A stretch of 64,000 nucleotides of DNA, taken from Macrostomum lignano. Lineage: Eukaryota. Positions 11,915 through 52,701 of this stretch are shown here, in pieces; position 1 is the first letter of the stretch; every line of letters starts with the position of its first letter. The notes under the pieces are model-generated. The model was not told the DNA's origin, did no database searches, and saw nothing but the letters and a program-made list of their open reading frames with translations. A program made the translations under genes and the position numbers. The stretch is taken from assembly GCA_002269645.1 (NCBI GenBank), contig NIVC01000469.1, positions 310,001-374,000 of the forward strand. Reading direction: 5' to 3'.

Positions 11915-12422
11915 CTTTCCCCTGTCTTTCTTTCCTCCGCCCTGCGCAGGGCCTTGCTTGGACTCAACCGCAGGGACATCAGGACGGTGACCATGGGCCC
12001 TCTCGGGTCATGGCTGTTTTGCCAGGCATCGCCACCTCCAGGGGAAAATCCGCAGTGAGGAATGCCCTTTCTGCCTCTCCGGTGTCGAGAATGCGGAGCA
12101 CTTCATCTGTGAATTTGTGAATCTGCCTTTACTCAGGACAGGCTCACCTACCTCGGCCCAAACCCGGACCTCTCCGACGTTTTCAGGCCCGAGAATCTTT
12201 GCCAGCTAGTCCGCTACCTAAGGGCTACCGGGCGAGCGACAATCCACCTCCTGGATTCTCCGGAAGGGGACTGCGCTGCGGACACCGGCACCACCGGAAC
12301 TTCCTGCGCGACACCGCAGCACTAGCTGCCCGTGGTCTCCAGGGGCTAGCGAAATGGGCGGCAACGCCTCCTCGCTGTCTCCGGACGCACGGAGCCCCCT
12401 GCAGCTAAGTAAGTAAGTAAGT
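11915..12422 (+). mobile_element. 5'-truncated non-LTR retrotransposon 3' end (RNase H/CCHC type, LOA/I-group-like) with (TAAG)n tail
   Basis: Near-identical by eye to 30540-31029; encodes GLNRRDI...[18 protein letters not shown] with indels; ends TAAGTAAGTAAGTAAG. Confidence 0.82.
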
Positions 12423-13125: not shown

Positions 13126-13865
13126 TCACCTCCGCTTGTCAGGAAATGCGGCCAGGGCGGATCGCTTCACAATAGCGTAGTAGCAGGCTCGGATGGCGGC
13201 CTCTGTCTCAGGCTCGTAATTGCACTCATCGGGCATGGAGTACGTCTTGATAGCGTTCTCCACCTGCGAGCGGATTTGCTCGTAGGAGACGCCGCCGATG
13301 AGCTCGCAGTTCCTGTTCTCGACGATGCACGGCCTGAAGCGAGTCTCGAACAGCTCCATCATCTGCCTCTCAGCGTTCTGCAAAAGGTTCAAACGAATTT
13401 TTGTCTCAGCTTTCTGCTCTGGTCTGTTTACATAAAGAAGCACTGAACGTAATGACGCACCGCAATCTCGGTGGGATCGGTCTTGCCAGCGATAGCGCTC
13501 TGCCTGTAGGACCTGAGCATTACGGCGTAGCAGCATGAGCGGACGCACGATTCGATAGTGACGTTGCAGCTGCACTCAGAGGGCAGCCTGAGGGAGTGCA
13601 GCCGGCGGACAAGCGGCGCGAAGCTTTCGAAGTCCCAGCCGACATTTTCAGGGCAGTTGATTTTGTTCAGGATGCATGGCTTCGCATACTGTTCCAGCAT
13701 CCGCAGTGTATCTTCGCGATTGGTCTGCGAAATGGATATTAGTGTTTGAACTGAACATTAATTTTGCAACGGTAAACTAACAGTCTATTGGAGACTTACA
13801 GGCGCAGATGGAGTGTTACAAAGAGCCACGAGAGGCAGAACGACGAGAAGGGCAAAACGGAACAT
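13126..13865 (-). CDS. Unrecognised secreted two-domain Cys-rich protein, copy A (193 aa); exons 13865-13800, 13724-13461, 13377-13126
   Basis: Exon 1 is a signal peptide (MFRFALLVVLPLVALCNTPSAP); both introns are GT-AG and phase 0; the ORF is open to TGA; the gene is paralogous to copies B and C with the same intron positions. Confidence 0.88.
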
Positions 13866-14734
13866 TTTTTGCAGAAGGCGATTACTTTTTGCCAGAACTC
13901 ACACAACAGCTCTTAGCCAGTTAAAGTTATCGAAAAATCGGGAATTTTAACGTCCTTTTATTCATTTTTAATAACAAGGCCCAGTGCTCTCCAGTCCAGA
14001 CACAGCTGACTAAACTAATCAGGAGAAAACTCTAACTTTTGCTGTCTTCAACTGCTTACTAAAGCGCATCCGGGGTACCGGATTCGCAAATTTTGAGCAA
14101 ATACAGGACAATTAGCAAGTAATTAGCGAGTCCTGAAACTAATTTTGTGTCTCTCCAGACTGTTCATACAGCTGGCTGCTTGCCCACACTGATTTCGCCT
14201 GCAAATAGGAAGTGAAATTTCAAGTTTTCTCGATCGAAACTCCTCTTAATTGGTTGATCAATAAACTCCATTTGATTAAGGGTGACTGAATCGGAATTGC
14301 TTAGTTGGAACAAAAGCCTTTTAAAAAAGAAAGGAGCTTCCTCTGAAGCTGAAGGGTGGGGTTGAAATGCAGCTAGACTACCATCCTTAACATTGATCAG
14401 TGTGTGTAACACAAGAAGCCAAAGCTCTCGCACACAATGCGGATGCAGCAGTTCATTAGGGCTGCATCGAAGCTGCAGCCTGATTGGGATAAGCATGCAG
14501 CGAGGTCAGTTGACAGCGGCTTTTAAAAAACATTTGTTGCTGAAAATATTGAGTTTTTTAGTTTTAGCAAGGGTTACATACGAGCGTACACCTGGAGTTT
14601 GAGACTTTTGAGTTTTGAGACTAACTCTGCCTGAAACATATGTTAGGCGCATATTACCCAGTTTCAAAGTTTGTTTTATTTGACCCGGTTCATAAATTTC
14701 ATACATTTACATTTACAATCATGCATGTATGCAT

Positions 14735-15165
14735 ACACACACATACATCCCCCCACACACACGCATACATGCATTCACACATACATACAGTCACATGCAT
14801 ACATACATTCACAGACTTACCCTACGTTCACTCACACACACGCATACAAGCATCCACACATACATACAGTCACATGCATACATACATTCACAGACTTACC
14901 CTACGTTCACTCACACACACGCATGCATGCATTCACACATACATACAGTCACATGCATACATACATTCACAGACTTACCCTACGTTCACTCACACACACA
15001 CATGCATGCATTCACACATACATACAGTCACATGCATACATACATTCACAGACTTACCCTACGTTCACTCACACACACGCATGCACGCATTCACACATAC
15101 ATACAGTCACATGCATACATACATTCACAGACTTACCCTACGTTCACTCACACACACCTACATAC
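14735..15165. repeat. 79-bp CA-rich minisatellite, about 5.5 copies
   Basis: CAGTCACATG recurs at 14788, 14867 and 14946. Confidence 0.92.
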
Positions 15166-15254
15166 ACGCATAAAACTAACAAAATTACTCAGCACGACAG
15201 AATGACGCCGAATGCAACGCAAAGCAAAAACGCGTGTTTTGCATTGAGCTTGCT

Positions 15255-15362
15255 CGTTTAAGAGCTTCCTCGGACAGCGTCCAGACGGTCCAGGTCCTGG
15301 CGGCATACATTGAGGTGGTCTCCACGATCTCCTGGAAGAGCTGCGACTTAACGCCAGTCATA
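15255..15362 (-). mobile_element. Possible short RTE-type LINE RT C-terminal fragment
   Basis: Minus-strand translation KSQLFQEIVETTSMYAARTWTVWTLSEEALKR loosely resembles the RTE motif K.RLF...V...LLYG.ETWTL; short and weak. Confidence 0.35.
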
Positions 15363-16009
15363 CATACAGCGCCGCTAGAACAGGTGAATTAAAAAGTAAA
15401 AAAGAAAGATAAAAAGAAAACAGTTAAAAAAGAAAAAAAGTCAATAAGCATAATGAAATAATACCAAGTCTTTTCAATATTTCAAGTTTTAATTTAATTC
15501 GCAGAGTCAGTTTCAATTTGTCTAGAGAAATCTTAAACTGAATTGGAACGAATTCAATACTTGTAAACCTAGGCAAGTTAGGCATTTTAAATAGCTCCAT
15601 GTTAACATTGCTATGTGGTTGTATGGAGTCGGTCATATTGATTGGGTAAATGAATATTACACGAGTGTTACACTCGTATATTTCAGAACTTTTTAGCCGA
15701 GCGTCTTGCTACGGTACTTGGCTTTCTTTTTTGCTCTGCGAAAAATAAAATTACTGTGCTGGCTCACATATGTGTATGGCACTAAGCCCACAAACACAGC
15801 ACACATCTTTTGCCCATAAACCACACGATACTATATAAATCCTTCAGGCTTTTGCGGCACGAGGATTTCCGACTTTTTGCCCTAGACAACCTGCTGGATT
15901 TGTATTTTTTCTTGATTTCAAGAGCGGGCCGAGAAACGACATTCTTCGGCCCGCTAGTCAAACTGCATTCGCTTCAGTCTTGCGCAGAGGCTCAGAGGCT
16001 TTGAAAAAG

Positions 16010-19000
16010 CTTTGAAAATAGTCTATGGTTTATGCGACGCGATACAGTACTCTCCTTTGTTTGCTAAGCTTCGAATCTTTTCATTTAGGAGCACAAGACC
16101 CTAGGAGCGCGCTGCCGCTAAAATATAGCTTAATTTCAAACTACCATAATTCATTGACTTGGCGTTCCTCAAACAAAACATGGCGACGAGGATAAAAAGC
16201 AACTGAGGGTCGAGGAAAATTCCGCACCTGCTGCCCTCAAAATGGCTCAGTCAATGGAGTACCGTCTTGGTGAGATGCCACTTTCTTACCCAGAGATAGA
16301 ACAATACTTCAAACGACTTCTGTTCTACCTGGAGGCAACTGAGAAGAATGAGCAAGCTAAAGCAGTCCTACTGGCTACCTGCGGTGAATCTGCATTCAAT
16401 CTGGTGGAGGAGCTGATAAAACCAGAAGACATCACCAAGGCCGGTGTTACGTTCAAGTCGATTCAGGACACTTTGCTCGAGCACTTCAAACCGAAAGTTC
16501 TGCTTCATTATGAGCGACATGTGTTCCATTCTACTGTTCAAAAGGACGCGGAGAGCATTACAAATTTCGTTGCACGGCTCAAGCAACAGGCGAACAAGTG
16601 CCAATATGGTGAATTGCGCGAAGACCTGATCCTGTCTCAGTTCATCTTCGGACTTCGTAGTCAGAATCTGCGGCAAAAACTGCTATCCAAAGGCACGCTT
16701 GAGCTTAATGATGCTATTCAAGAGGGACTCATGACCGAGTCAATTGCAACTGCTACAGACAAGCCGGAAACTATCGCTAATGTGCAGAATGCTGGGACAT
16801 TCTCGAGACCAAGAAGCTGCAGTGCCCAACGCTCTGTCTCATTCAAGCAACCTCAGGGACATCTGCATAATCAGTCGAGCGGCAAACCTAAAGGTAAAAC
16901 GGCTAAGTGTCACACCTGTGGGAAATCGGGACATCTACGATCAGCATGCAGGTTCCGAGAAGCCAAGTGCCATAAATGCGGCAAGGTAGGACATCTAGCT
17001 ACCGTGTGCAGATCAAAGGCTATGAACGCAATCCAACGAATGCCAAGCTGCAGCCCTTCACCAGGGAACACTAGCTCTTACCATCTGGAACTCATTCATG
17101 CGGTTAGACAGCCAAAAACGGGTTACTCAGATCAGTGGTTTGTTCGGTGTCGTCTAGGAAAAACCGAAGTCAACATGCTTGTGGACACCGGCAGCCAAGT
17201 AACCGTGGTTCCGGATCAAATCGCCAAGAGCTCAGGCTTAGAGTTACAGCCAGTCAGCCAAAAACTAAGATCTTACGGAGGTTTTCAAGCTACGGTCACT
17301 TCTGTCATCTACGGGGCAAAGCTACAGGTTATTGGTGGCAAGTCTGCTTCAGAAAACATCTACGTCGGTCATGATACAACAGCTATTCTGGGCATGAACT
17401 TCATACCGTCCCTAGACCTAGTGCGAATGGATCAAGCGGTTCGAGTGTCGAATGAACACAAGTGCCTACCAGTCGTCCGAGATCAAAACTCAAACTTCAT
17501 TGCCAGCTTTCGCTTACGTTCGGGTGTGAGTATGGAAGGCATGCGATTTCCTGCTCGCTCACTTCCTTTCTCCATGAAGTCTATGGTAGAAACCGAACTA
17601 AGAAGACTTCTTGCTTCAGGAATCATCTATTCAGTCAAGAATCCTACTGTTGCAGCGCCAATAGTCCCAGTGGTCAAGCCCGAGGGATCAGTAAGACCTA
17701 TTCGACTGTGTGGCGACTACTCTATGACGCTCAATCGTCTTATTGACGTGGACAAGTACAGGTTTCCGAAGATGGAGGAGATCCTGGCTAAGATTCCCAA
17801 CGCTAAATTCTATACGGTCCTAGACTTAGAACAGGCCTTCTTACAGGTGGCTCTATCCCCTGAGAGCCAAGAGCTCACATGCATTTCTACTCACATGGGA
17901 TTCTTTGCATTCAGATATCTACAATTCGGGATTTCCGCGGCGCCTCTAATATTTCAGGAAATCATGGACGAAGTTCTTCGGGATGTACCATTTACAGCCT
18001 CATATCAGGATGACATCATTATTGGGACTCCTGAGGATTCAGCCGAAAAACACATGCAGCTGGTTCGTCAAGTCAAGGATCGTTTGGCAAACTGCGGGTT
18101 CAAGATTAACCAGAGAAAGTCTCAAGAATGTCGTAGAGAAGTTCGATTTCTTGGCTTCATTTTGCGCGATGGAGGCATGCACCCCGACCCAGCACGAATG
18201 GAGGCGTGGAAGAGGTTACCATATCCAAAAGACAAAGACCAACTGCGCAGCGCTCTGTGCACCTTCCGACACTATGGCGTCTTCTGCAAGAACTTTTCAA
18301 TGATTGCACGACCGTTATATCAGCTGCTGAAGAAAGGAGTTCACTGGAGTTGGCATGGAAAGCAGTCTGAGGCATTCGACAAGCTTAAGAGCATTATTGC
18401 AGGCGGTGTGATAACCGCATACGACATTACGAAGCCGTTGTACTTGATTTGTGACGCCTCTAAGGATGGCCTCGGGTACGTTCTAGCTCATGATCCAATG
18501 CAAAGACAGGTTGTCTGGCTAGGCAGCCGAGTCCTGACTCCAGCGGAGAGCAACTACGCTAACATTGAGCGGGAGGCGTTAGCGATCGTCGAAGGGACCA
18601 GATACTTTTATCAGTACCTCGCGGGTCGAAAATTTACCATCATTTCTGATCACCGACCGCTTCAGTACATATTTAATCCGAACAAGGTCTCCGAGCGAGT
18701 TTCAGCAAGGATTCAGCGATGGGCATTACTGTTAAGAGCTTACGATTACAATGTGATGTACGTCAAGGGTGAAAAGATGTACGCTGCAGACACTTTGTCT
18801 AGACTTCCATTGCAGTCGGACTCAGCGGATCAGAAGATCAACCTCCTAGAAATCAATGCACTGGAGGGTTTCGGAAACTCCGAACAGCTACTGCAGAGGA
18901 TCGTGCGAACTAAAGATTACAAGTTGGACATGCTCAAGAAGTACATTCAAGACGGCTGGCCTGCTTATCCACCACCAGCTATGCTGCCATATGCACGCAA

Positions 19001-20359
19001 TAAGTTGGAATACACACTCCAAAATGGAGTGATTTTCAAAGGATTGCGCATCGTCCCACCCTCTAGCCTGAGAAGCGAAATTCTTCAGATGCTTCACGAG
19101 GACCACCCCGGCATCGTGAGGATGCTACGTCTATCCAGACAGTACTTCTGGTGGCCCGATATAGATGCTCAAATCAATGCATTCGTTCAACGTTGTGTTC
19201 AATGCCAGCTACATGCTAGGAAAAGAAGCAATGCAAATCTGTCGTCATGGCCGGAGACAAAAAGTTTCTTCGAGAGAGTTCACGTTGACATCGCTACTTT
19301 CAAAGGTCAACGCTTCCTTGTCCTGGTTGACCATTTTCAAAATGGGTAGATGTACAGTCCGTGCCGTCAATGAAAGCATCCATTGTCATCAGTGCGCTGA
19401 GAAAAACGTTCAAGTATACCGGATTGCCGAAAAATCTGGTTTCGGACAATGGTGGAACTTTTGTGGCAGAAGATTTCGTTACTTTCCTGCGAGAGAACTA
19501 CATCGTCCACACACTTACTCCCCCAGGACATCATCAGTCCAACGGTCAGGTGGAGAGAGTCATTGAAGAATTGAAGTTTTATTTAAGAAAGTTAAACGCT
19601 GGTGCCAATCTTTCTGAGCTGGAAAGGCATTTAGCAGGATTCTGCCTGTTTCAGAATACGACTCCTCACTGCAATGGATCAATTCCAGCACTTCTGGTGT
19701 TTCAGCAGTCGCCCCGAACACGTCTATCAGCCGTTTGTACAGAGAGGACGAGGCCGGTTCAAGAGCCAGTTCCTGTTTTCGTGCGTGTGGAGCACAAGGA
19801 GCAACGGGTCCCCTCTGAGCTGAAGTCTACAGTTGGTACAAATACTTTCCGAGACGCAGAAGGACGACTAGTGCACCAGTCCGATGCTACTGCTCGTACA
19901 GAGGAACTACCGATTGATGATTCGAAGCAGTCTGGGATCACCCCTCGTGATACTGATGCAACTACGTGCCAAGACAGTGCTACGACAAGTCCAATGCGCC
20001 ATGCAATGCAGTCGCCTAGGCACAAGGAACACGGTGTGCTCGAGTTCCGTAGGAGCACGCGAGTCAGGCGACCTCCGGAACGATTGACTTATTACTGAAT
20101 TGCTTGAGGCGTAACTTTGAACTGCACTGTATAAGCATCGGTGGGGGTGTTGCGTATTGCTATGACTACTGCAAAGTATAGACTTTTACTTTGAAAATAG
20201 TCTATGGTTTATGCGACGCGATACAGTACTCTCCTTTGTTTGCTAAGCTTCGAATCTTTTCATTTAGGAGCACAAGACCCTAGGAGCGCGCTGCCGCTAA
20301 AATATAGCTTAATTTCAAACTACCATAATTCATTGACTTGGCGTTCCTCAAACAAAACA
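16010..20359 (+). mobile_element. Young Ty3/Gypsy LTR retrotransposon (Mag/K02A2.6-like). 3' LTR 20148-20359 (TG...CA); 5' LTR 16010-16180 lacks its first 41 bp; PBS 16181-16193; PPT ~20140-20147
   Basis: 171 bp are identical between the LTRs. PBS TGGCGACGAGGAT is complementary to the 3' end of eukaryotic tRNA-Ser(GCU) (ATCCTCGTCG-CCA). GGTGGGGG precedes the 3' LTR. Confidence 0.95.
16242..20098 (+). CDS. Gag-Pol polyprotein (two CCHC knuckles, aspartic protease, RT, RNase H, integrase) with one -1 frameshift near 19335
   Basis: CHTCGKSGHLRSAC, CHKCGKVGHLATVC, LVDTGS, RLCGDY, YQDDII, CDASKDG, SDHRPL, integrase H..HPGI...C..C, VSDNG, SNGQVER. CATTTTCAAAATGG is one T short of the expected DHFSKW. 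Confidence 0.93.
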
Positions 20360-20470
20360 AATACAAACCCTGTGATTCTAATATCTCCTGACAAATTCAA
20401 ACCTGACCCATAGCAGGGTCTTTCTGAGCAAGCTACAATGAGCAAGCTTCTGTCAAGCTACAATGATAGA

Positions 20471-20742
20471 TTGTGTATATGGTTTTGGAGGTAGACAATG
20501 GATAAATAATCAAGCGGTCCCAGTGCGTGACAACGATTGTCTGGCGAGCGCCGGTAGGCGCGAGCCATAGACAAATCGTTGTCACGTGCTGCGACCGCTG
20601 ATTCTTTGCATTGTTTTTCTGTTTGCCGATCCTACAGACAATGCATTGTTTGCAGTAATGGATTGTTCTGCATTAAAAATGTGAATAATGATCGTCAAAT
20701 TGCTAAAATTTATCATTGTCTATGACAAAACCATATACACAA
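20471..20742. mobile_element. Fold-back MITE-like element of about 270 bp with an internal hairpin
   Basis: TTGTGTATATGGTTTTG (20471) and CAAAACCATATACACAA (ending 20742) form a perfect inverted repeat that extends inward imperfectly; inner hairpin CGTGACAACGATT...AATCGTTGTCACG at ~20524-20586. No TSD identified. Confidence 0.65.
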
Positions 20743-21069
20743 ACACATTGTCTCATGAATGTATTTTTAGAAGCCTAAAATAATGATTCCTAAGCGTGGA
20801 ATAATGAGCGTACAGCATGACACAATGATCTTATCTTTAAAAATAATTGTTGGAATATTTTTGCATTAGCATTAACTTTCCGCTGCGTAAATAAAATGCA
20901 AGACAAAGATTTAAACACAGATTTTGCAATGTTGTACCCAGTACCAAACTAGCGTAACTTCATCGGATATCGAGCTTTGTTTATTTCCATTGTTCTCATA
21001 TAGATCTGATACACTGATCTGTGCATCACGTCAAGTCAATTTTCCGATTCATTGTGAGTTGCCGGGTGC

Positions 21070-21797
21070 TCACTTCTTCTCAGGAAAGGCGGCCAGAGCA
21101 GACCGCTTCAAGAAAGCGTAGTAGCAGACGCGGATGGCGGTCTCCGACTCGACCTCAAAGTTGCACTCGTCGGGCAATGAGTAGGCCTTGACCATCTGCA
21201 GCACCTGGTTGCGAATTTGCTCATAGTTGATGCCGCCAGCCAGCTCGCAGTTCTTGTTCTCCAGAATGCACGGCTTGTAGTAAGTCTCGAACAGCTGCAT
21301 CATCTGCCTCTCGGCATTCTACAAACGTGCGTTCAGCTGCACTTACTCTTAGGGAAACTTGAGGACTGCCAGCAAGAATGTGTAACTCACTTCGATCTCA
21401 GCAGGATCGGTCAAGCCGTTGAGCACGCTCTTCCTGTAGGTATTCAGCATGATGGCATAGTAACACGGACGGATGCACGACTCACTGCTGACGTCGCAGT
21501 CGCACTCAGGAGGCGGCCTGTGAGCTCGCATCTGGCGGACCATTGGAGCGAAATTCTCGAATTTCCAATCGTCGTTCTCAGGCGGACAGTTCGTGTTGTC
21601 CACGATGCAGGGCCTCACGTGCTCCTCCAGCATCTTTAGCATCTCCTCTCGACTGGACTGAAACAATTGGAATGTTAAAGCGGCTTCTACACCAGCCTCA
21701 TCGCCAAAGCACTGCATTAGTAACATTCTCTTACCGTGGATGCAGTGATGCACAGAGCGACAATTGGCAGGACGACAAGCAGTGCAAAACGAAGCAT
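21070..21797 (-). CDS. Unrecognised secreted two-domain Cys-rich protein, copy B (192 aa); exons 21797-21735, 21657-21391, 21318-21070
   Basis: Signal peptide MLRFALLVVLPIVALCITAST; phase-0 GT-AG introns; open to TGA. Confidence 0.9.
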
Positions 21798-22789
21798 TGT
21801 CGTTCGGTATTCGGACTCGATTTGGACTGTCGGCTTTTTTGGAGCTGTGTGAACGACTGTCTTGTATTGTTGAGCATGGAGACTGGCAACGATCCTTGCT
21901 TCCTTATATCCCCTCGATTCTCAAGCTGAAATGACTCTCTATTGACTCAACTGAACAAACTCTTCTGATATCAATCCAACTACTCGAGGTCGATATTGGA
22001 ATTGAATTGGCTTTTCTGCATTTAGGGGAGAGAAAGTTTTGCTAATTGTTTTTTTCGGCGCAGTTCCACTTCACTCACTACTTCATTTTAAAGAGATTCG
22101 GAATTTGATGACAGATATTTTGGAAATTGGAAGCATTACATTCTTTTTCTAGACTGACTAGGAAGATATTCTTGTTTTGGTTAACATTACTGCATGAAAT
22201 TCTGGGAGAAGTTTCCCTTTTACCCACCCTAGCAACGCCGCTAAATTGAAATGGTGTTCTCCTAGACTAATCTAAACCTCTACAAACTACCTTGGTATTT
22301 AGTATAATCTGCCTTGGTATTGAGCACACGAAAAACAGTTATTAGCAATAAAGGTCGGTTAAACATAATTTATTCGTGCAATTAAAAGCCTTTGTCAATA
22401 CCGGTAAAAGTTACGAGCGTAAAGCTAAATGCGGTTCACTTCAGTGAATTACAATAAAATTGAAGTGATCGGATTCGTTCATTTGTTTGTTTAGCTGATT
22501 GAAAGCGGCTGAAATTTTCTAGAGAACAGAATGAAGCAGCAATCCGATTATTGAACTGAAAAACTATTGTTTGCACATGAGAAAGTTCGGTAGCATTTGA
22601 GCACTCGATTTTTAGTCGTTGCACTGCGTGAACAGCAAAACTCTAGAGACTCAGTTTTTTACTGTCAGATTTGCAACTAGCTTCAATATTGCTTTCGTTG
22701 TCAGTATCAAAATTAATTGCTCTTTTGCATCAAAAATTTGGCTCCACAAATTCTTAATGTAGGGGGGCTCTGTGGGGCTTCATTGATGC

Positions 22790-23485
22790 AGGTCGAAGGC
22801 TGTACGGTAGCGGCGTCCCATTTAAAGGCTGGAGGGTAGCGACGTCCCATCAAAGGGCTAGGGAATGGTGATGTCTCATCAAAGGGCTAGGGAATGGTGA
22901 TGTCTCATCGAAGGGCTGGATAATGGTGATGTCTCATCAAAGGGCTGGAGGTTGGAGATGTGTCATCAAAAGGCTGGAGGATGGAGATGTGTCATCAAAA
23001 GCCTGGAGGACGGTGATGTCTCATCGAAGGGCTGGATAATGGTGATGTCCCGTCGAAGGGCTGGAGGATGATGATGTCTCATCGAAGAGGAGGGTAGCGA
23101 CGTCCATCGAAAGGCTGGAGGACGGTGATGTCCTATCGAAGGGCTGGAGGATGGTGATGTCCCATCGAAGGGCTGGAGGATGATGATGTCTCATCGAAGG
23201 GCTGGAGGACGGTGATGTCTCATCGAAGGGCTGGATAATGGTGATGTCCCGTCGAAGGGCTGGAGGATGATGATGTCTCATCAAAGAGGAGGGTAGCGAC
23301 GTCCATCGAAAGGCTGGAGGACGGTGATGTCCCGTCGAAGGGCTGGAGAATGGTGATGTCCCGTCGAAGGGCTGGAGGATGGTGATGTCTCATCGAAGGG
23401 CTGGAGGATGGTGATGTCCCGTCGAAGGGCTGGAGGATGGTGATGTCTCATCGAAGGGCTGGAGGGTAGCGACGTCCCATTGAAG
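22790..23485. repeat. Degenerate 29-bp minisatellite (GGTGATGTCYCRTCGAAGGGCTGGAGGAT)n with apparent higher-order duplication
   Basis: Repeated unit read directly; the variant block GAGGGTAGCGACGTCCATCGAAAGG recurs at ~23090 and ~23290. Confidence 0.9.
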
Positions 23486-24359
23486 GATCGGAGGACATTG
23501 TCCCTTGATTTTACTTCAAGATAAGTGTGCTTTGAGCAGACTGTGGAAGCAAGTTCGCTACACTGGGGTTCAGGCCCGATGAGACCAATATCGGGTGGTG
23601 AAGGCAGGTGCAAGGTGAGAAGTTAAGCATTACTTTTTAGCGTTAAACGCGAAGTACCTACTCGTAGAAGAAAAATAAGCTTCATTGGACTGCCCATCAA
23701 AATATAGAACTACCTTTCAGCAAATTTTAAAATAAGAAGTCCCAAATTTTATCTATAAACTGGTTCGTTGAATGTTGCTGCTTAGATACGAGTGTATAAA
23801 TTGGTTGAATCATAGATTACGAGTACAATAACAAACGATGCCATCGTGGGATGAAGAAGCCATGGGTTAAAAAATTCCCGGAGCAAAATAAGAACCAAAA
23901 TGATTGATAGATTCTAGGTGTTTTTGTACGCGTACGAGTATTCTAACAAAAAGTTCATTGATATTCAAATCAAATGCATTCGCTCTGTCGGTGGAAATTA
24001 CCTGTTTGCTTGAGTTTTTATGAATCGATAAATGGAAAATCATCTCTACGAGTACACAGACAGCTGTGCAACCAATAATCCACCCATTTATGCCTCTGCA
24101 CCTCCTCTTAATTGCTTTTGCGTTTGCCCACCTGGGCAGCTTCGACTTTGAAATCGGCGGCTCATAATGTCGTAGTCAGCTCATAATCCTTTCAACGTTA
24201 AATTTCCTTTTGATAAAAACAGCAGCTGAGTTTACATTAAACCGCGCGGTAGCTGATCTGCAGACTGACTCAATAAAAGGTAGTCCGATTGTCTCAGTTG
24301 TTTGACTATTTTACAGGCATTAATGGTTTAAACCTTGCCTGAACTGCATCAGCTGCACC

Positions 24360-25009
24360 ATGAAGCTGCAGAATCTGATTCTGACGCTGTGCTTTGCGAT
24401 GGCGGCCGTCGATGAGGAGTCTGCAGCTGTTTGCGCTTAAAATCCCTGATGATTCTCCTCACCAAAATCACCCTAGCCATATCTGATGTGCTCATACACA
24501 AGAGAATCGCTCCCCATATATTCGTACTTTCTAGATGCCTGTCCAACTCTCTACTTGAGCAGGAGCAACATTAGCGGGGTCATGTCATCGAGCCACGGCT
24601 TCCCGCGAGTCTGCGGTGTTGAGTACTGCCACAATCTGAATTGCAACTACGAACTCGTTCCCGCGCGCAACAACTCAGGCCGCGGGGTGATTGTCCGGTT
24701 CGACATTTCAACACGGAGAGCTATCACGATTTTGTGCGGCTGGAGTACATCAACTTGCAGGGACAGCTCGTCACTGGACAGTTCAGCGGAAGTGTCGGCT
24801 CGTTCCGTGCGCGTCTGCCCGCCATGCAGGGCACTCCGGTTAGGATGCGGTGGAACACGGACAGCAGTGTGAACAGCCTCGGCTTCCTAATGAGGTTCCA
24901 TGCTGTGCCGGCTCCCCCTGTGCGCCGGTACAGGCTGGGTGGCATGCTGGAAGTGAGTGAGAACGGAGTTCGCGGCTCAGTCAGGGTCGAGAAGGCCAAG
25001 CGAAAGTGA
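24360..25009 (+). pseudogene. Single-CUB-domain secreted protein, copy 1, probable pseudogene; exon 1 24360-24411, exon 2 24535-25009
   Basis: Signal-like MKLQNLILTLCFAMAAV. The donor position reads AT (24412-13) where the paralogues have GT. There is a 1-bp deletion near 24700 (DACPTLY...VRFD switches frame to HFNTESYHD). It ends RYRLGGMLEV...EKAKRK like the paralogues. Confidence 0.82.
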
Positions 25010-25645
25010 CTGACATATGTAGCTGCTGGTTTCTGAAATGGTAGACGCGCAATGATATTTAATTTAAAGATGATTAAAATAAGCAAGCATAAAATATACT
25101 GGATTATCTGTTCAACTCTTGGCCCACTCGCTTACAAAATGACCTTGCAGCTTTCGTTACACCAACACAGTGCGGATAGCGCTCTTTCGACGCTTATAAG
25201 TTAGACTATACACTATACGATGACATTAAAGTGCAATTCAAAGCTGTTGTTTACCAGATGTGGGGGCACATTACAATGGGCTTCGAATTAAAAAACTCAT
25301 GTTTAAATTTTTGAAGCATTATTAGCTGATATTTTTGTTGAGGTAACCTTTCTTCAAACTTCACCTTGAAACTCTACAGGACTGAAACTGGAAGAGCCAA
25401 TGCATTATTCCAGAACTGTTTGCTATAGTACAAACCCATTGAATAATATTCCGATATCGATTGAGTAAGATCTTTAACTGGAAACTGGAAAGTTGAGTCA
25501 ATAGAGAGTCATTTCAGTTTGAGAATCGAGGGGATATAAGGAAGAAAGGACGTTGCCAGTCTCCATGCTCAACAATACAAGACAGCCGTCTCACACAGCT
25601 CCGCAAAAGCCGACAGTCCAAATCGAGTCCGAATACCGAACGACA

Positions 25646-26373
25646 ATGCTTCGTTTTGCACTGCTTGTCGTCCTGCCAATTGTCTCTCTGTGCATCACTG
25701 CATCCACGGTAAGAGAATGTTACTAATGCAGTGCTTTGGCGATGAGGCTGGTGTAGAAGCCGCTTTAACATTCCAATTGTTTCAGTCCAGTCGAGAGGAG
25801 ATGTTAAAGATGCTGGAGGAGCACGTGAGGCCCTGCATCGTGGACAACACGAACTGTCCGCCTGAGAACGACGATTGGAAATTCGAGAATTTCGCTCCAA
25901 TGGTCCGCCAGATGCGAGCTCACAGGCCGCCTCCTGAGTGCGACTGCGACGTCAGCAGTGAGTCGTGCATCCGTCCGTGTTACTATGCCATCATGCTGAA
26001 TACCTACAGGAAGAGCGTGCTCAACGGCTTGACCGATCCTGTTGAGATCGAAGTGAGTTACTCATTCTTGCTGGCAGTCCTCAAGTTTCCCTAAGAGTAA
26101 GTGCAGCTGAACGCACGTTTGTAGAACGCCGAGAGGCAGATGATGCAGCTGTTCGAGACTTACTACAAGCCGTGCATTCTGGAGAACAAGAACTGCGAGC
26201 TGGCTGGCGGCATCAACTATGAGCAAATTCGCAACCAGGTGCTGCAGATGGTCAAGGCCTACTCATTGCCCGACGAGTGCAACTTTGAGGTCGAGTCGGA
26301 GACCGCCATCCGCGTCTGCTACTACGCTTTCTTGAAGCGGTCTGCTCTAGCCGCCTTTCCTGAGAAGAAGTGA
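25646..26373 (+). CDS. Unrecognised secreted two-domain Cys-rich protein, copy C (192 aa); exons 25646-25708, 25786-26052, 26125-26373
   Basis: Inverted near-identical copy of B; phase-0 GT-AG introns; intact ORF. Confidence 0.9.
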
Positions 26374-26599
26374 GCACCCGGCACTCACAATGAATCGGAA
26401 TATTGACTTGACGTGATGCACAGATCGGTGTATCAGATCTATATGAGAACAATGGAAATAAACGAAGCTCGATATCCGATGAAGTTACGCTAGTTTGGTA
26501 CTGGGTACAAAGTTGCAAAATCGGTCTTTAAATCTTTGTCTTTGATATTGGCAACAAAATGTCAATACCAATATTCTCGGAGTTAACTTTAACGATAGA

Positions 26600-26808
26600 G
26601 CTGAGTATAGAGTACATGAAGTTTCAGATGCTCCGAGTTTAACTTTTGTAGGCTTGGGTTCAAGCACCAGGTTTCTTTCAGGACAAATTTACATGTCGAA
26701 CCTCTATGTTTGTACTCAGAGTGCACACTTGCCCTTGAGTACAGGCTCGGTGGCATTCTGAAGTCAGTGGAAATTAAACGCAAGAGGCTGAAAAAACCAT
26801 TCATCTAA
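26600..26808 (+). pseudogene. Degenerate remnant of a further CUB-family copy (3' part)
   Basis: TACAGGCTCGGTGGCATTCTGAAG (YRLGGILK) matches TACAGGCTGGGTGGCATGCTGGAAG of copy 1; upstream ATAGAGTACATGAAGTTTCAG resembles CTGGAGTACATCAACTTGCAG. Confidence 0.45.
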
Positions 26809-27399
26809 TTATTGCTTAATTATGTCAAGAAACTAGCAAACTAACATTTTGAAACGTCTCCCTACTGCATGTATCTATCTATTGCAATATCTGTATTTAA
26901 GTTTATAATCAAATCTGTTCGTCTGTAAGCCATTGCTATTTTAGGAAAGCACGTCAGTACTTTCAGCAGTACTGAAGCACGCAAGCCACAAGTCGATGTG
27001 TAGCCTCTTTTGGTATCCACGGCAGCGACCGTTAGCTATTGAACTGCTTAAATGACGACAGCCCTAAGTAGACACAAAAAAGTCAGTATAAGCAGTTGTT
27101 TTTTCGCTAACCCTGCGCTGAAAATCTGCATCAGTGAAACTCGACACCGAAAAAAATGTTCTGTGTTCAGCACTGAGAGCTTTGAACGGGTCTGTTTTGC
27201 TGGCTCAGCTTCTGTGCCTCACCTGCAGGAATTATAATTTTAGTTGGGACTGCTCACGTGGGTCTTACATTGATATGAGGTATCGCTGTGCCAGCTGAGA
27301 AAGAGAGGGGCGAGAGGATGAAGAAGAGAAAAGTGATGTTAGATTGGGGAGAGTAGAGAGAAAGAAGAGAGGGGAGAAGAGGGGAGAAAGGGGAGGGAT

Positions 27400-27781
<382 letters not shown>

Positions 27782-28505
27782 ATGCATTTTGCTGTAAACA
27801 ACTGCAAAGAGGGGCAGCGTCCAGACAGTCATGAATAGCAAAGAGGTGGTGGCAAAATATACCAGAAATATTCTCCAGGTCAGAAAGTGATAAAGATTGA
27901 TGGGCCTCTGACCCAGTCAGAACTAATTGGTTTCTATTAAGATACAGCTTTGAACAATACAATGATGTGCGTTCTTTTGCTATCGAGGTGGCCTGAGGTT
28001 GTCAGCTAAAGTAATCATCCCTTCAGGTGTTCACGACGAGGCTTATATCCTTCTTCAGACGGCTGTGGATGGTCAACTTCAACAACAGTCCTGGTGGGAT
28101 ACAAGGAGCTGGTAGCATTAAAGTGATTTAATTGCTTCAAACAGACAACTGGATGAAACTGCTGATTTTATCGCTGGTATGGTTCAAGTCGAAGGTCAGA
28201 TCTTTTTTAAAACTGTTCAGGTGAGCTAACAAACTCGAAAAATCAGAAATCAAAATTGTCAATGAGAAGTTAACAGCTGCAGACTAAATGGCTTGTACGG
28301 GCAGGGGTATCTTTTCAAGATTGGATCCACTACCTCACAGGCAAGAATATCCCTGACTGTTCTGTTAAACGTGCAGCTGTGTTTACTCAACTGAAAGCTC
28401 GTTGATTACTCTGCAACTCTATAAAGTCCAGATTCAATTCCAAAGAGAGCTGACTGAGCTAAAGTCAATTTTTTGCGCATAGTTTTGACTCAAATTTGCG
28501 TTGGA

Positions 28506-29113
28506 ATGAAATCTTTGGGTCTTCTTCCGTTGTTTCTGGTCTGCCTGATCGGTGCGTCAGTTGGTAAGTGAAGATAGCTGCTGGATGAATTACTCTGCAG
28601 CTTAACGTCTGCAAGCGAAAGTCCACTCGCCCCCGCCTTTCAGACGCCTGCCCGACGCTGTACCTGCAGACTCTTCGCGGTTACGAAGGCGTTCTGTCAT
28701 CCAACTACGGCTTTCCGCAGAGGTGCAACGACCAATACGCGCACAACCTGAATTGCAGGTACGAGCTGGTCTCCGGGCGCAACAATCCCGGCCGAGGAGT
28801 GTACATCAGCTTCGCCTACTTCAATACCGAGCTCAGCTACGACAAGGTGTTTATTGAGTACACCAACACGCAGGGTCGCAACGTGACCGGCTACTTTTCT
28901 GGCAGCGTGGGCGGATTCAGCCGCGTGTTGGACTCTCAGAGGGGAACCCCAGTTCGACTGATTTTCATCACCGACCACTCCGTCAGTGCCTACGGCTTCC
29001 TGGTGAGGTTTAAGGTTGCCCCGGCAATGCGATTCAGACTTGGCGGCACGTTTGAAGTTGACCAAAACGGACTCGAGGGCACTATTCGCGTTGACAGGGC
29101 TAAACGGAAGTGA
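28506..29113 (+). CDS. Single-CUB-domain secreted protein, copy 2, intact; exons 28506-28563 and 28644-29113
   Basis: Signal MKSLGLLPLFLVCLIGASV; phase-1 GT-AG intron; DACPT...GVLSSNYGFP...YAHNLNCRYEL...VYISFAYFNTELSYDKVFI...VRLIFITDHSVSAYGFLVRF matches the CUB consensus. Confidence 0.9.
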
Positions 29114-29270
29114 CAGGATGAGAGACATGTGGCAGATGCGCAGAGTTGTAACAACTGATTCAAATAAAAATATAAACATGTACGAGCCGTGGATGTATCT
29201 TTTCACAAATGGCCCACTCGCAATGCAATTATTTAAAGCTTTTATTCGCCTTATTTATTTTTTTGACGAA

Positions 29271-29448
29271 GTTCTAGATCAATAGAATCTGGATAGGAAA
29301 CCTCTTGCCGCAGCAATGGAGTTCTAGATCAATAGAATCTGGATAGGAAACCTCTTGCCGCAGCAATGGAGTTCTAGATCAATAGAATCTGGATAGGAAA
29401 CCTCTTGCCGCAGCAATGGAGTTCTAGATCAATAGAATCTGGGGAGGA
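29271..29448. repeat. 50-bp tandem repeat, about 3.5 copies
   Basis: GTTCTAGATCAATAGAATCTGG recurs every 50 bp. Confidence 0.95.
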
Positions 29449-30330
29449 AACTCAATACTCATTCGGATGTTAATGATTTACCATAGTGAATTCTGATAAT
29501 TTTTTACATTCTAAGAGTTGCGAAACTTATGGTTCGTAATTTTGATACTATCTGAATGTTGGCATGTTGGAATGCATACTGTACATCATCAGTAAGGATG
29601 TAAGAGAATTTTCATCGCTTTGGTTATTGAGACTTGTTCATTTTAAAACTTCTAATGAAAGATATGTTACCCTCCAAAACGTTACGAGCTCATGGACAAC
29701 TAGAGTAGAAGGATGCTACACTCGCGAATCGTGTAAAATTGGCTGGAGGCCAAAATTCAAAAGTCAGTATCTCTTGATTGGCTGCATAAAAACTAAAAAT
29801 TCTAGAAATTTGTTGTCTCGAGTAAAACGATTAATGCTTATCTTTGCTATTAATCGGCACTGAACATGTATAGAAAACTATAATCAGTCAGAAAATAACG
29901 CAGTCGGAAGTCAAAACAGACCCATTCGGCCACACAAGCCACAGCTCCCTTCTAGTAGATTCTTTTATCTTGTGCCATCAGTAAAATATCTGATGCATAA
30001 TCAGCTTATAAAAGCCGTATGAAAACAAGTGCGAATATGTATATTATATAGGCTTTAATATAATTATAAAGCAATAAGGCAATAAAGATGATCTCGTGTA
30101 AAGTTTTATAAAGCTATCGATCAAAAGACGAGAATTTTTGGCAATGTAAGGGCTGTTTTGGCCAATAGTGGCACAAAAGGACCAGTAAAGAAAAACTGTA
30201 GGTGGCACTTAATGGGAACAGGTGGGACACTTTCTTTTGCGATGCTAGGAAACTTTTGTGACACAGTGGGGATAATTGTAGATACTGAGGGGGGGCTCCA
30301 GATAGCTACTATATCACGTAGGGACGGTAG

Positions 30331-31029
<699 letters not shown>

Positions 31030-31510
31030 AAGACTGAGGGAGGCATTATTCATTGCTGAGCGTATGAGCATATTAAATCTGGTGCATTCTAGTAAATTCT
31101 TCACACTGCACCAACCACTTTGATGTCCATGCAGGTTCACCACTAGCCAACTTGTCAGATAGTAGTACTTTCCAGTCACCAATCCTATCCATGTCATTGA
31201 ATTACTCAAATTTAGCTGCCTCTTTCGCATGAAAAATAATATATTCTTCTATCTCGCTAGTGTATTTACGTGAAAATTTGGCCTCCAGCCCGATTTCCAC
31301 GAAAGCCGAGTGTAGCGTCCTTCTACTCTAGTTGTCCATGTACGAGCTACTAGCGTAATAATGCTTCGAAAATTTAAACGTGACTTCCAAAATCGGGTTT
31401 TTGGAAAGCTCAGTTTTGGAAAACAATGAGTACGAGCGTAACATTTCGGATAAAGTTTCTGATTTACTATAGTTTTAGGAGCAACAAAACATTATGCAAC
31501 TTTTTAGACT

Positions 31511-32160
31511 ATTTACAGAATCTGACACTCATTCAGACATCCTGACACGCATTTACAGAATCTGACACTCATTCAGACATCCTGACACGCATTTACAGAA
31601 TCTGACACTCATTCAGACATCCTGACACGTATTTACAGAATCTGACACTCATTCAGACATCCTGACACGTATTTACAGAATCTGACACTCATTCAGACAT
31701 CCTGACACGCATTTACAGAATCTGACACTCATTCAGACATCCTGACACGCATTTACAGAATCTGACACTCATTCAGACATCCTGACACGCATTTACAGAA
31801 TCTGACACTCATTCAGACATCCTGACACGCATTTACAAAATCTGACACTCATTCAGACATCCTGACACGTATTTACAGAATCTGACACTTATTCAGACAT
31901 CTTGACACGCATTTACAGAATCTGACACTCATTCAGACATCCTGACACGCATTTACAGAATCTGACACTCATTCAGACATCCTGACACGCATTTACAGAA
32001 TCTGACACTCATTCAGACATCCTGACACGCATTTACAGAATCTGACACTCATTCAGACATCCTGACACGTATTTACAGAATCTGACACTTATTCAGACAT
32101 CTTGACACGCATTTACAGAATCTGACACTCATTCAGACATCCTGACACGAGCTTACAGAC
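31511..32160. repeat. 40-bp minisatellite (ATTTACAGAATCTGACACTCATTCAGACATCCTGACACGY)n, about 16 copies
   Basis: Direct reading; highly homogeneous. Confidence 0.97.
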
Positions 32161-32596
32161 TGTGACAGGGATTTTAGTGCCTTGGAATCTTTTAACTGAT
32201 TTTTTCAGCCATTATCGCCTAAAAAGGAATGCGAATTTCAAAAGCCACCGACAGCCCATGCAGTTGTAACCTACTCAAACAGAGTAGTGCCTTGGTGAAC
32301 CCAAAATGCCACTGGTTAAACAGAATGATTGATTCAGCAAATAAGTAAATTTGTTGTTGGGCCATAATTTAATTAAATCCGTGCAAGTCGCTCTAATAGC
32401 TTGCTCAATTAAGCTTGATTTTTGTGAATAATGCTAGCAACAGAAGCAGGTGAGTCTACAAGGTGCTAATTGATTACCAATGCAGCAGCTAAAATCTTCA
32501 GGTCTATAAAAATCGGCGGGTTTGCAGTCGCGAAAAATTCTTCAATAAAGTTGAACGGCGATTTATCGACAACAATTGCTGCGCCTATTGAAGAAA

Positions 32597-33945
32597 ATGA
32601 AGCTGCTGGGACTTCTGATTGCGACTATCGCGGTGTCTGTCGGTAAGTTTTCTTGTCTAGTAGGTTTGACAGGTGCCGCTCCCAGTGTCTAACAGGTATC
32701 TCTCCCAGTGTCTAACAGGTATCGCTCCCAGTGTCTAACAGGTATCGCTCCCAGTGTCTAACAGGTATCGCTCCCAGTGTCTAACAGGTATCGCTCCCAG
32801 TGTCTAACAGGTATCGCTCCCAGTGTCTAACAGTCGCTCCAGTGTCTAACAGTCGCTCCCAGTGTCTAACAGGTATCTCTCAGTGTCTAACAGGTATCGC
32901 TCCCATTGTCTAACACTGTCGCTCCCAGTGTCTAACACTGTCGCTCCCAGTGTCTAACAGGTATCTCTCAGTGTATAACAGGTATCGCTCCCAGTGTCTA
33001 ACAGGCATCTCTCCCAGTTGACTAACAGGTATCGCTCTCAGTGTCTAACAGGTATCGCTCCCAGTGTCTAACAGGTATCGCTCCCAGTGTCCAACAGGTA
33101 TCGCTTCAGTTCTAACAGGTATCGCTCCCAGTGTCTAACAGGTATCGCTCCCAGTGTCTAACAGGTATCGCTCTCAGTGTCTAACAGGCATCTCTCCCAG
33201 TGTCTAACAGGTATCGCTCCCAGTGTCTAACAGGTATCGCTCTCAGTGTCTAACAGGTATCGCTCCCAGTGTCTAACAGGTATCGCTCCCAGTGTCTAAC
33301 AGGTATCGCTCCCAGTGTCTAACAGGTATCGCTCCCAGTGTCCAACAGGTATCGCTCCCAGTGTCTAACAGGTATCGCTCCCAGTGTCCAACAGGTATCG
33401 CTTCCAGTGTCTAACAGGTATCGCTCCCAGTGTCTAACAGGCATCGCTCCCCTAAAAATGCACCTTCAGACGCCTGCCCAACTCTGTTCCTCACGCCGGA
33501 CCGGCAGAGCGGTGTCCTGTCCTCCAACTACGGCTATCCCCGCAGCTGCTCCAGAAACTACGTCAACAGGCTGGACTGCACCTACGAGCTGATCTCCGGT
33601 CGCAACAACTATGGCAACGGAGTCAATATCAGCTTCGCCTACTTTAGCGTCGAGACCCGGTACGATCGAGTTTACATCGAGTACACCAATTCTCGCGGCC
33701 AGCGGGTCACCGGCTACTTCACTGGCAGCCTGGCCGGCTTCAGCAGGCAGCTGCCGGCCATGCGCGGCACCCCCGTGACACTCCGTTGGGTCACCGACCG
33801 CTCGGTCACCAGCGTCGGCTTCCTGCTGCGATTCAACAGCCGCAACAGGTCACCGGAGCGCCGCTTCCGCCTGGGCGGCACCGTGAACATCGTCGGCAAC
33901 GAGGCCCGCGGCTCCTTCCGTATTGATCCATTCAAGAAGAAGTGA
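32597..33945 (+). CDS. Single-CUB-domain secreted protein, copy 3, intact; exons 32597-32642 and 33470-33945
   Basis: Signal MKLLGLLIATIAVSV; phase-1 GT-AG intron; DACPTLF...GVLSSNYGYP...LDCTYEL...ISFAYFSVETRYDRVYI...LRWVTDRSVTSVGFLLRF; C-terminal RFRLGG...FKKK. Confidence 0.9.
32675..33450. repeat. 23-bp minisatellite (CCCAGTGTCTAACAGGTATCGCT)n filling CUB copy 3 intron 1
   Basis: Period read directly (32704, 32727). Confidence 0.96.
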
Positions 33946-46567: not shown

Positions 46568-47587
46568 AGGCCCCGGTGTGGCGCTCCAAAAAAGGCTTCA
46601 TGAATTCAACCCTGTCTCTTTGGTATATTTGTTCAAACAGAGCGCCTCTCTCTCACAGTCTAACAGCCAAACGCACCACGAAATTACAATGGCGACAAAA
46701 ACAGGGAGAGAAGTGAAACAGCCTCTTTCAAGCTGGAGTTCGGACATGAGGGCCCCCTAGGGTGCTAGAGAGAGTTGAGGAACTGCAGACTGAGTCCGCG
46801 ATGTGAGTAAGCGTTCTCTAATGGGAAACTATCTAGATATACATGAGGTCAGGCCCTGTATATGCAACTGACAATTGCCTGTGCTGGGCATGTCAGGGAA
46901 TCACACACTACTGGACAACTATATCGATGTAGATAGCTTGAAGAGGCTCACTTAAGTCTGACGAACTCACCCCTATAGCCCCAAGTCTCTGCTCTGTCGC
47001 CATCCATCCTTGAGTGACGTGAACAATTTGGCTTGAAGAAAGCTGTCCACTCAGCTCAGACTTAACAGGAGTCATCGATATTAATAGTAGCTATGCTGGC
47101 TCAATCAGCAGGTGGGCCACATTCTATTGAGTGGTGATAGGTGTGCGTTCCACCCGTTTCACAGGTCACTTGAGCATGCACAGGCGGAGACATGGACAGC
47201 TCTGCTTAGAATCGTAGAAACGTAGAAAACTACTGCATAGTTTTTGCTATATTAAGTTTTCGACCGGGTGAAATTTCGACCTTGTATGGTTTCGACACTT
47301 TCGACACTACGATTGTATGGTACGATTTTTACTGACTTGATTCTATACTGACTGCTTTTTAGCGAGCGCCTTTGTCTTGCTGGTTAGCATAGCTAAAAGC
47401 ATTTGTTTGCTACAAGAAATGCTTCAAAATGCTTCGATTTCTTAAGGGGCGGGTTCTGATATGGCAGGAAAAGAAGCTGACCCAAGTAGTTGATGAGGTT
47501 GCGACTCAGCATTAGCTGGGGTAATTGAGGGTGTGTGTGGCGACTCCCCAGTCCTTGACTGAACAGCCGTACGCAGCCTTCAGATGC

Positions 47588-52654: not shown

Positions 52655-52701
<47 letters not shown>

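Follow-up and report, generated by a model that had tools for sequence, protein, structure and literature searches.

Gene content of the locus

We analysed a 64-kb stretch of contig NIVC01000469.1 (GenBank assembly GCA_002269645.1) of Macrostomum lignano, a free-living, simultaneously hermaphroditic flatworm (the window, to which all coordinates refer), and focused on a cluster of genes for two unrelated families of small secreted proteins, one rich in cysteine (CysA, CysB and CysC) and one built on a CUB domain (CUB1, CUB2 and CUB3). An earlier sequence-only reading had listed seven elements of these families as interleaved and in rapid birth and death. Using tblastn of both sets of proteins against the window together with direct reading of the sequence, we recovered all seven between 13126 and 33945 and in the order proposed, namely CysA(-), CysB(-), a CUB1 pseudogene(+), CysC(+), a weak CUB scrap, CUB2(+) and CUB3(+). 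The order thus held, whereas genuine interleaving did not, since a single inverted copy, CysC, accounts for the apparent mixing. Without it the order reads CysA(-) CysB(-) followed by CUB1(+), scrap, CUB2(+) and CUB3(+), that is, two adjacent head-to-head arrays, and the interleaving therefore stems from one event.

The gene models are given in Table 1. All introns follow the GT-AG rule, the CUB1 donor excepted, and TATA-like boxes lie about 90–105 nucleotides (nt) upstream of each ATG, with poly(A) signals present as well. In every gene the first exon encodes a hydrophobic signal peptide, which bears out the description of both families as secreted. Three models matched NCBI proteins exactly: CUB3 (BOX15_Mlig018739g2, 173/173 residues), CysA (P0002, BOX15_Mlig029205g3) and CysC (P0001/P0010). 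For CysB, database matches were confined to M. lignano proteins, at 99% and 62% identity, the latter being P0002, that is, CysA. CysB and CUB1 stand head to head, 2.5 kb apart. The sole intron of CUB3 consists almost wholly of a 23-nt minisatellite (32669-33451, about 35 copies), as against 80 nt for the homologous intron of CUB2. No extra copies of either family were found elsewhere in the 64-kb window by tblastn and hidden Markov model (HMM) searches, and scans of the window for Rfam families and tRNAs gave no matches.

Table 1. Genes, repeats and insertions of the locus in window coordinates (LTR, long terminal repeat; LINE, long interspersed nuclear element; TSD, target-site duplication; aa, amino acids)
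Feature	Position	Strand	Details
CysA gene	13126..13865	-	exons 13865-13800 (signal peptide), 13724-13461 (domain 1), 13377-13126 (domain 2); 193 aa; BOX15_Mlig029205g3
CysB gene	ATG 21797, stop 21070	-	exons 21797-21735, 21657-21391, 21318-21070; 192 aa
CUB1 pseudogene	24360..25009	+	two lesions: splice donor and 1-bp deletion
CysC gene	ATG 25646, stop 26373	+	exons 25646-25708, 25786-26052, 26125-26373; 192 aa
Weak CUB remnant	26587..26773	+	two colinear fragments, 26587-26627 and the better 26739-26769
CUB2 gene	28506..29113	+	exons 28506-28563 (signal peptide), 28644-29113 (mature protein); 175 aa, intact
CUB3 gene	32597..33945	+	exons 32597-32642, 33470-33945; 173 aa; BOX15_Mlig018739g2
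Inverted-duplication arm 1	20893..21952	-	whole CysB gene with TATA box and poly(A) signal
Inverted-duplication arm 2	25491..26549	+	CysC gene
Ty3/gypsy LTR retrotransposon	16010..20359	+	LTRs 16010-16180 and 20189-20359, 171 nt, 100% identical
5'-truncated LINE (non-LTR) fragment	30345..31031	+	687 nt; 13-nt TSD 30332-30344 and 31032-31044
29-nt minisatellite	22815..23486		spacer between CysB and CUB1; strongly diverged between both contigs

Inverted duplication and age of the arrays

The recent inverted duplication reported before was confirmed as a pair of 1.06-kb arms with 97.7–98% identity. The CysB and CysC proteins differ by two residues, and their synonymous divergence (dS) is 0.025 (Nei-Gojobori estimates, as for all ratios below). 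We compared the window with a sister contig, NIVC01002407.1 (locus L002), on which the CysC protein is encoded twice. The DNA of the CysC arm is 100% identical to the same arm on that contig, and the inverted duplication predates the split of the two contigs. A tree of the four repeat arms, ((wC,L2C),L2B),wB (w, window; L2, L002), did not group them by position. Divergence between the contigs is a mosaic, with 2–3% over the CysB arm and the sequence upstream of it and 0–0.3% from CUB1 to beyond CysC (20822-27780 versus L002 5246-12219). To judge from these patterns, mosaic and tree indicate probable gene conversion or recombination between the inverted arms or the locus copies. Because of such exchange, arm identity underestimates the age of the duplication.

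The paralogues themselves are far more diverged. CysA and CysB differ with a nonsynonymous divergence (dN) of 0.23 and a dS of 0.92 (ratio 0.25), and the CUB pairs with a dN of 0.38–0.47 and a dS above 1.25 or saturated (ratio 0.29–0.37). On these estimates both arrays are old and under purifying selection, and recent events are limited to CysC, the CUB1 lesions and two transposon insertions. Therefore the rapid turnover proposed earlier fits only these few recent events; as a general property of the families it is not supported, given that paralogue dS ranges from about 0.9 to values above 1.25 and dN/dS from 0.25 to 0.37.

A sister copy with an intact CUB1 gene

L002 is colinear with window positions 14610-32167 at 97–100% identity and carries CysB(-), CUB1(+), CysC(+) and CUB2(+) in this order. 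There CUB1 is intact and annotated as a gene of 175 amino acids, whereas no CUB1 is annotated in the window. The window copy has two lesions: its exon-1 splice donor reads AT for GT (24412-24413, G to A), and exon 2 has lost 1 bp between 24704 and 24705, outside any homopolymer run. Since these are the only intragenic differences from the intact L002 copy, CUB1 of the window is a null copy or pseudogene of very recent origin, if it is not partly an assembly error.

A recent whole-genome duplication and a redundant assembly have been described for M. lignano (PMC10468722), and the L002 copy would be either a homeologue from that duplication or a haplotype. In both cases the loss of CUB1 in the window would be the loss of a redundant duplicate. 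Loss in one of two near-identical locus copies is expected in a recently duplicated genome (PMC10468722).

A 40-nt minisatellite upstream of CUB3 spans about 0.7–0.9 kb in the window (31511-32167) and more than 4 kb on L002 (16577-20809+). Where the match to the window ends, L002 carries an open reading frame (ORF) for a Tc1/mariner-like transposase helix-turn-helix (1096-1386 (-)). The available 3 kb of L002 to the left of the match did not contain a recognised CysA.

Transposon insertions and neighbouring features

The fresh LTR insertion noted from the sequence was corroborated: the LTRs are identical, the element is absent from L002, and on the empty site of that contig its flanks are joined directly. 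Its direct LTRs and the Pfam domain order gag, protease, reverse transcriptase, RNase H and integrase mark it as a Ty3/gypsy element. A frameshift near 19349-19361 interrupts the integrase core, and no heat-shock element was found in the LTR. At the left LTR junction, positions 15995-16025 read GCTTTGAAAA-A-GCTTTGAAAA, a 10-nt duplication of the junction between flank and LTR.

A second young insertion, a LINE fragment, had not been listed before. It is flanked by a clean TSD (GACTGAGGGAGGC), is likewise absent from L002, and the empty site is clear there. Its 3' end has a 97% identical copy at 12000-12410, 18.6 kb to the left.

The window is rich in minisatellites, for example at 36488-40062 (24 nt x 149) and 43571-46570 (34 nt x 87). 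From about 46171 (+) (L003 20607 onward) follows an annotated gene of 360 amino acids with an EF-hand match and faint matches to SPARC_Ca_bdg/FSTL1; this gene, too, is of the secreted type and begins some 12 kb rightward of CUB3. An ORF at 52700-53650 (+) with weak helix-loop-helix and Hairy-Orange Pfam matches probably belongs, as one exon, to a HES-like bHLH gene.

The Cys-rich family

The Cys-rich proteins of the locus have about 20 kDa. Their signal peptide is followed by a domain of about 75 residues with six cysteines that occurs twice, one domain per exon with phase-0 boundaries. Domains 1 and 2 are recognisably related (tblastn E ~3e-8), and the cysteines are spaced C-x6-C-x27-C-x-C-x6-C-x3-C. 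Across eight aligned domains C17, C24, P49, C52, E59, R63, C65, Y67 and A68 are invariant. C54 and C61 are present in six of the eight and are both missing from domain 2 of CysA and of CysB; since they were lost together, this points to them as likely partners of one disulfide. Up to three disulfides are predicted to hold the helices of the domain together. Mature CysA has 11 cysteines and CysB/C have 10, the latter proteins being acidic (isoelectric point, pI, 5.0).

An exhaustive phmmer search of 1.84 billion representatives returned four proteins and a profile search of 5.8 billion returned three, all from M. lignano. Further members are the two-domain protein P0005 and the single-domain proteins P0006 and P0007/P0009. 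About 5 kb from the P0006 gene lies another Cys-rich copy in inverted orientation (L004 10001-10849 (+) and 15966-16170 (-); the same in L005), and inverted pairs therefore recur in this family.

AlphaFold2 on the alignment of eight domains gave a three-helix domain with a mean predicted local distance difference test score (pLDDT) of 81. Foldseek with this model found no match in the PDB (best E 3, template modelling score <0.33), and sequence and profile searches with the family gave none in Pfam (E<=1-10) or the PDB. The domain is undescribed and restricted to Macrostomum in the databases searched. Automatic UniRef names did not stand up: 'Saposin B-type domain-containing' (CysA and CysB) lacks a Pfam SapB match and a Foldseek saposin and has the wrong cysteine spacing, and WAP (P0007) conflicts with six rather than eight cysteines per domain and no Pfam match. 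Pfam matches to Kazal_2, PLA2 and DUF7545 were all far below threshold.

The CUB family

The CUB proteins are secreted-type proteins of about 17.7 kDa with one CUB domain and a conserved basic tail of 25–30 residues; the mature proteins are basic (pI 9.4–10.3). CUB3 (29.2 bits) and CUB2 (27.7 bits) score above the gathering threshold of Pfam CUB (PF00431, 21.4 bits), and the intact CUB1 of L002 (21.1 bits) falls just under it. Against solved structures, a profile of the three CUB proteins matched PCPE-1 CUB (7.6e-5) and cubilin (0.009).

Mature CUB2 and CUB3 have three cysteines and CUB1 four, so that the spare cysteine noticed in both families is indeed there. By alignment the first canonical CUB disulfide is kept (C1 in ACP, C2 in DC-x-YEL). 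The second is absent, with C3 and C4 both replaced, and an extra cysteine stands at position 27. The second disulfide is missing from some bona fide CUB domains too, and its loss therefore does not exclude membership in the family. E62, D66 and D110 are acidic and invariant in the three paralogues and presumably correspond to the Ca2+ ligands of ligand-binding CUB domains, with which they align. The proteins would act as soluble ligand-binding modules and, because of these residues, may use a Ca2+-type acidic site. One HMMER alignment to PCPE-1 offers a lead that the tail with RFRLGG could be what is left of a second CUB domain; when the C-terminal tails alone were scanned against Pfam, there was no match.

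The CUB remnant is the weakest of the listed elements. Its better fragment has a 32-nt match of 87.5% identity to the CUB1 tail (blastn E 3e-4) and encodes EYRLGG, which matches the tail motif RYRLGG; with nhmmer we obtained E values of 0.09 and 4.5 only. Its identity is plausible from these similarities but not secure. Of the two dead copies proposed earlier, CUB1 stands as a young pseudogene, and the other is an old scrap of plausible but insecure origin.

Origin of the locus

As a whole, the locus is best explained by two unrelated tandem arrays lying head to head, one inverted copy, and later insertions together with the loss of CUB1, a history that we hold to be probable. A minus-strand array of CysA and CysB faces a plus-strand array of CUB1, the scrap, CUB2 and CUB3. 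A segment of 1.06 kb with the complete CysB gene and its promoter entered the CUB array as an inverted copy, and this copy is CysC. The copy of the locus in the window later gained the Ty3/gypsy element and the truncated LINE, and CUB1 took its two disabling changes; the inverted arms would swap sequence by gene conversion. Birth and death at the locus is real but modest. Most of it is explained by a single inverted copy, by active transposons and by a redundant duplicate having been lost after the genome duplicated.

The head-to-head position of CysB and CUB1 would also follow if the ancestral unit had been a divergent pair of a Cys-rich(-) and a CUB(+) gene with a common intergenic control region, and if such pairs had been copied and the CUB partner then lost beside CysA and CysC. 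The scrap directly adjoining CysC fits this, as does a stretch that faces CysA head to head and bears a very weak likeness to CUB (14137-14244, tblastn E 0.078). This stretch was not significant, however (HMM iE, the independent E-value, 6.4), and the duplicated arms carry the Cys-rich gene alone, with no CUB sequence. Moreover, instead of facing CysC head to head, the adjoining scrap is found downstream of that gene and beyond the repeat arm, and CUB2 and CUB3 are without a Cys-rich partner. We regard an ancestral pair as highly improbable.

Several observations weigh against the history of two separate arrays, and we take them up here together with the alternatives that they favour. No TSD of 4–6 bp was found for the LTR element when its flanks were compared with the empty L002 site. 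The AlphaFold2 model of CUB3 is all-beta, with about 10 strands, but of low confidence (pLDDT 52), which makes its Foldseek matches meaningless. Two disabling lesions as the sole differences between the CUB1 copies are unusual for neutral decay and could partly be assembly error. In that case part of the birth and death would be an artefact that arose when a polyploid genome rich in repeats was assembled from PacBio data (Mlig_3_7), and the inverted duplicate, the CUB1 lesions or both would be unreal. A 1-bp deletion is a typical error of long-read assemblies, the 10-nt junction duplication at the left LTR end points in the same direction, and redundancy of the assembly is known (PMC10468722). 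Yet the inverted duplication was assembled independently on two contigs, with an asymmetric unique spacer of 3.5 kb and non-identical arms. The splice-donor change is a substitution and not an indel, the deletion lies outside a homopolymer run, which argues against error for both lesions, and a CUB1 gene is annotated on the sister contig while the window has none. We therefore consider an assembly artefact very unlikely.

The remaining observations that count against two separate arrays concern a link between the families. The sequence-only reading had suggested, as a hypothesis, that the products may be co-expressed or interact, and had compared the locus with reproductive (seminal-fluid or gamete-recognition), adhesive or defence clusters. 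Spelled out, this reading makes the families one functional unit whose secretion would be reproductive (from seminal fluid or the prostate), adhesive or defensive, with selection keeping the cluster together and driving rapid birth and death. Known roles of CUB proteins suit this idea: single-CUB secreted proteins, the spermadhesins, are seminal-plasma components in ungulates, and CUB proteins are part of the Drosophila sex-peptide network. Clustering is tight and is kept on the sister contig. Odd cysteine counts in both families (11 in CysA; 3 in CUB2 and CUB3) leave unpaired cysteines that fit an interaction, as does the opposite net charge (CUB pI 9.4–10.3 versus pI 5.0 for CysB/C), and the invariant arginine of the Cys-rich domain could be bound by a Ca2+-CUB site. 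The motif CAGCTGWGT (E-box core) occurs only three times in the 64 kb (14000-14008 (-), 24223-24231 (+) and 28374-28382 (+)), each time in sense orientation and at the same promoter position, about 125–143 nt upstream of the ATG of CysA, CUB1 or CUB2. In addition, M. lignano has numerous uncharacterised, prostate-limited secreted transcripts (PMC5977470).

Other results speak against a functional unit. At 97–100% identity to the window, L002 is not independent evidence of conserved linkage, and beyond the window linkage of Cys-rich and CUB genes was seen only in this near-identical copy. Near the distant Cys-rich members (three loci, L004–L006) no CUB gene was present within 10 kb, either annotated or by tblastn, and linkage to CUB is therefore not a property of the Cys-rich family. 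The paralogues are old, and their dN/dS of 0.25–0.37 is not the signature of fast-evolving reproductive genes. No promoter k-mer of at least 7 bases was common to CysA, CysB and at least two CUB genes. As for CAGCTGWGT, the pattern was picked post hoc, it occurs no more often than chance would give, and in CUB1 and CUB2 it goes back to common descent, so that as a signal of co-regulation it is a lead only. Expression data for the gene IDs of the locus were not found in the full texts searched or in the supplements of six M. lignano transcriptome papers, and full-text searches for literature linking Macrostomum with CUB or saposin found nothing relevant. On balance we consider one functional unit rather unlikely. 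The evidence leans against an obligatory linkage of the two families, and their adjacency is most likely historical rather than functional.

Both families would be products of gland or secretory cells. A narrower proposal makes the Cys-rich helical proteins and the single-CUB proteins partners, as subunits of a single secretion from a gland such as the prostate or another reproductive gland, joined through unpaired cysteines or through a Ca2+-type CUB site binding the invariant arginine; this we judge distinctly unlikely. Should the families prove to be secreted together as partners by a reproductive gland of M. lignano, a model for sexual selection, the locus would provide tractable targets for RNA interference.

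If the history of two head-to-head arrays is right, the locus exemplifies the ordinary evolution of lineage-specific secreted tandem arrays in a genome that was duplicated recently and whose transposons are active. One inverted copy, exchange by gene conversion, the loss of a redundant duplicate and fresh insertions come together in it, and because the sister contig offers an intact CUB1 and empty insertion sites, it is useful as a clean, datable example. The Cys-rich domain family is the one new item of the locus and is worth a Pfam-style description.

Comparison with known systems

The prostate-limited Mlig-pro transcripts of M. lignano (PMC5977470) resemble the genes described here in being small, signal-peptide-bearing and taxonomically restricted, with no informative BLAST matches. 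The gene IDs of the locus were absent from the searched supplements, and no tie to any Mlig-pro transcript or to the prostate was found.

With saposin-like proteins the Cys-rich family shares small size, helical character, secretion and six cysteines per domain. It differs in having three predicted helices instead of four or five, in a cysteine spacing unlike the saposin pattern, and in matching neither the SapB_1 nor the SapB_2 profile.

Like the spermadhesins (PSP-I/PSP-II, AWN, aSFP), the CUB proteins are small and secreted, combine a signal peptide with a single CUB domain and are encoded in a tandem gene cluster. If the two families were indeed partner subunits, they would constitute an invertebrate counterpart of spermadhesin complexes with an undescribed, Macrostomum-restricted three-helix disulfide domain. 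The CUB proteins of the locus differ from spermadhesins, however, in their additional conserved basic tail of 25–30 residues, in the absence of the second canonical disulfide and in an extra cysteine. Their closest solved CUB domains are those of PCPE-1 and cubilin, and no spermadhesin in the PDB was matched at E<=1. PCPE-1, cubilin and the Ca2+ CUBs of C1r/C1s/MASP are multidomain proteins, whereas the CUB domain of the locus stands alone, and alignment to the Ca2+ CUBs needs a 4-residue gap around the second ligand. What the locus proteins have in common with them is the Pfam CUB match and the acidic residues that, as far as alignment can tell, appear to occupy equivalent positions.

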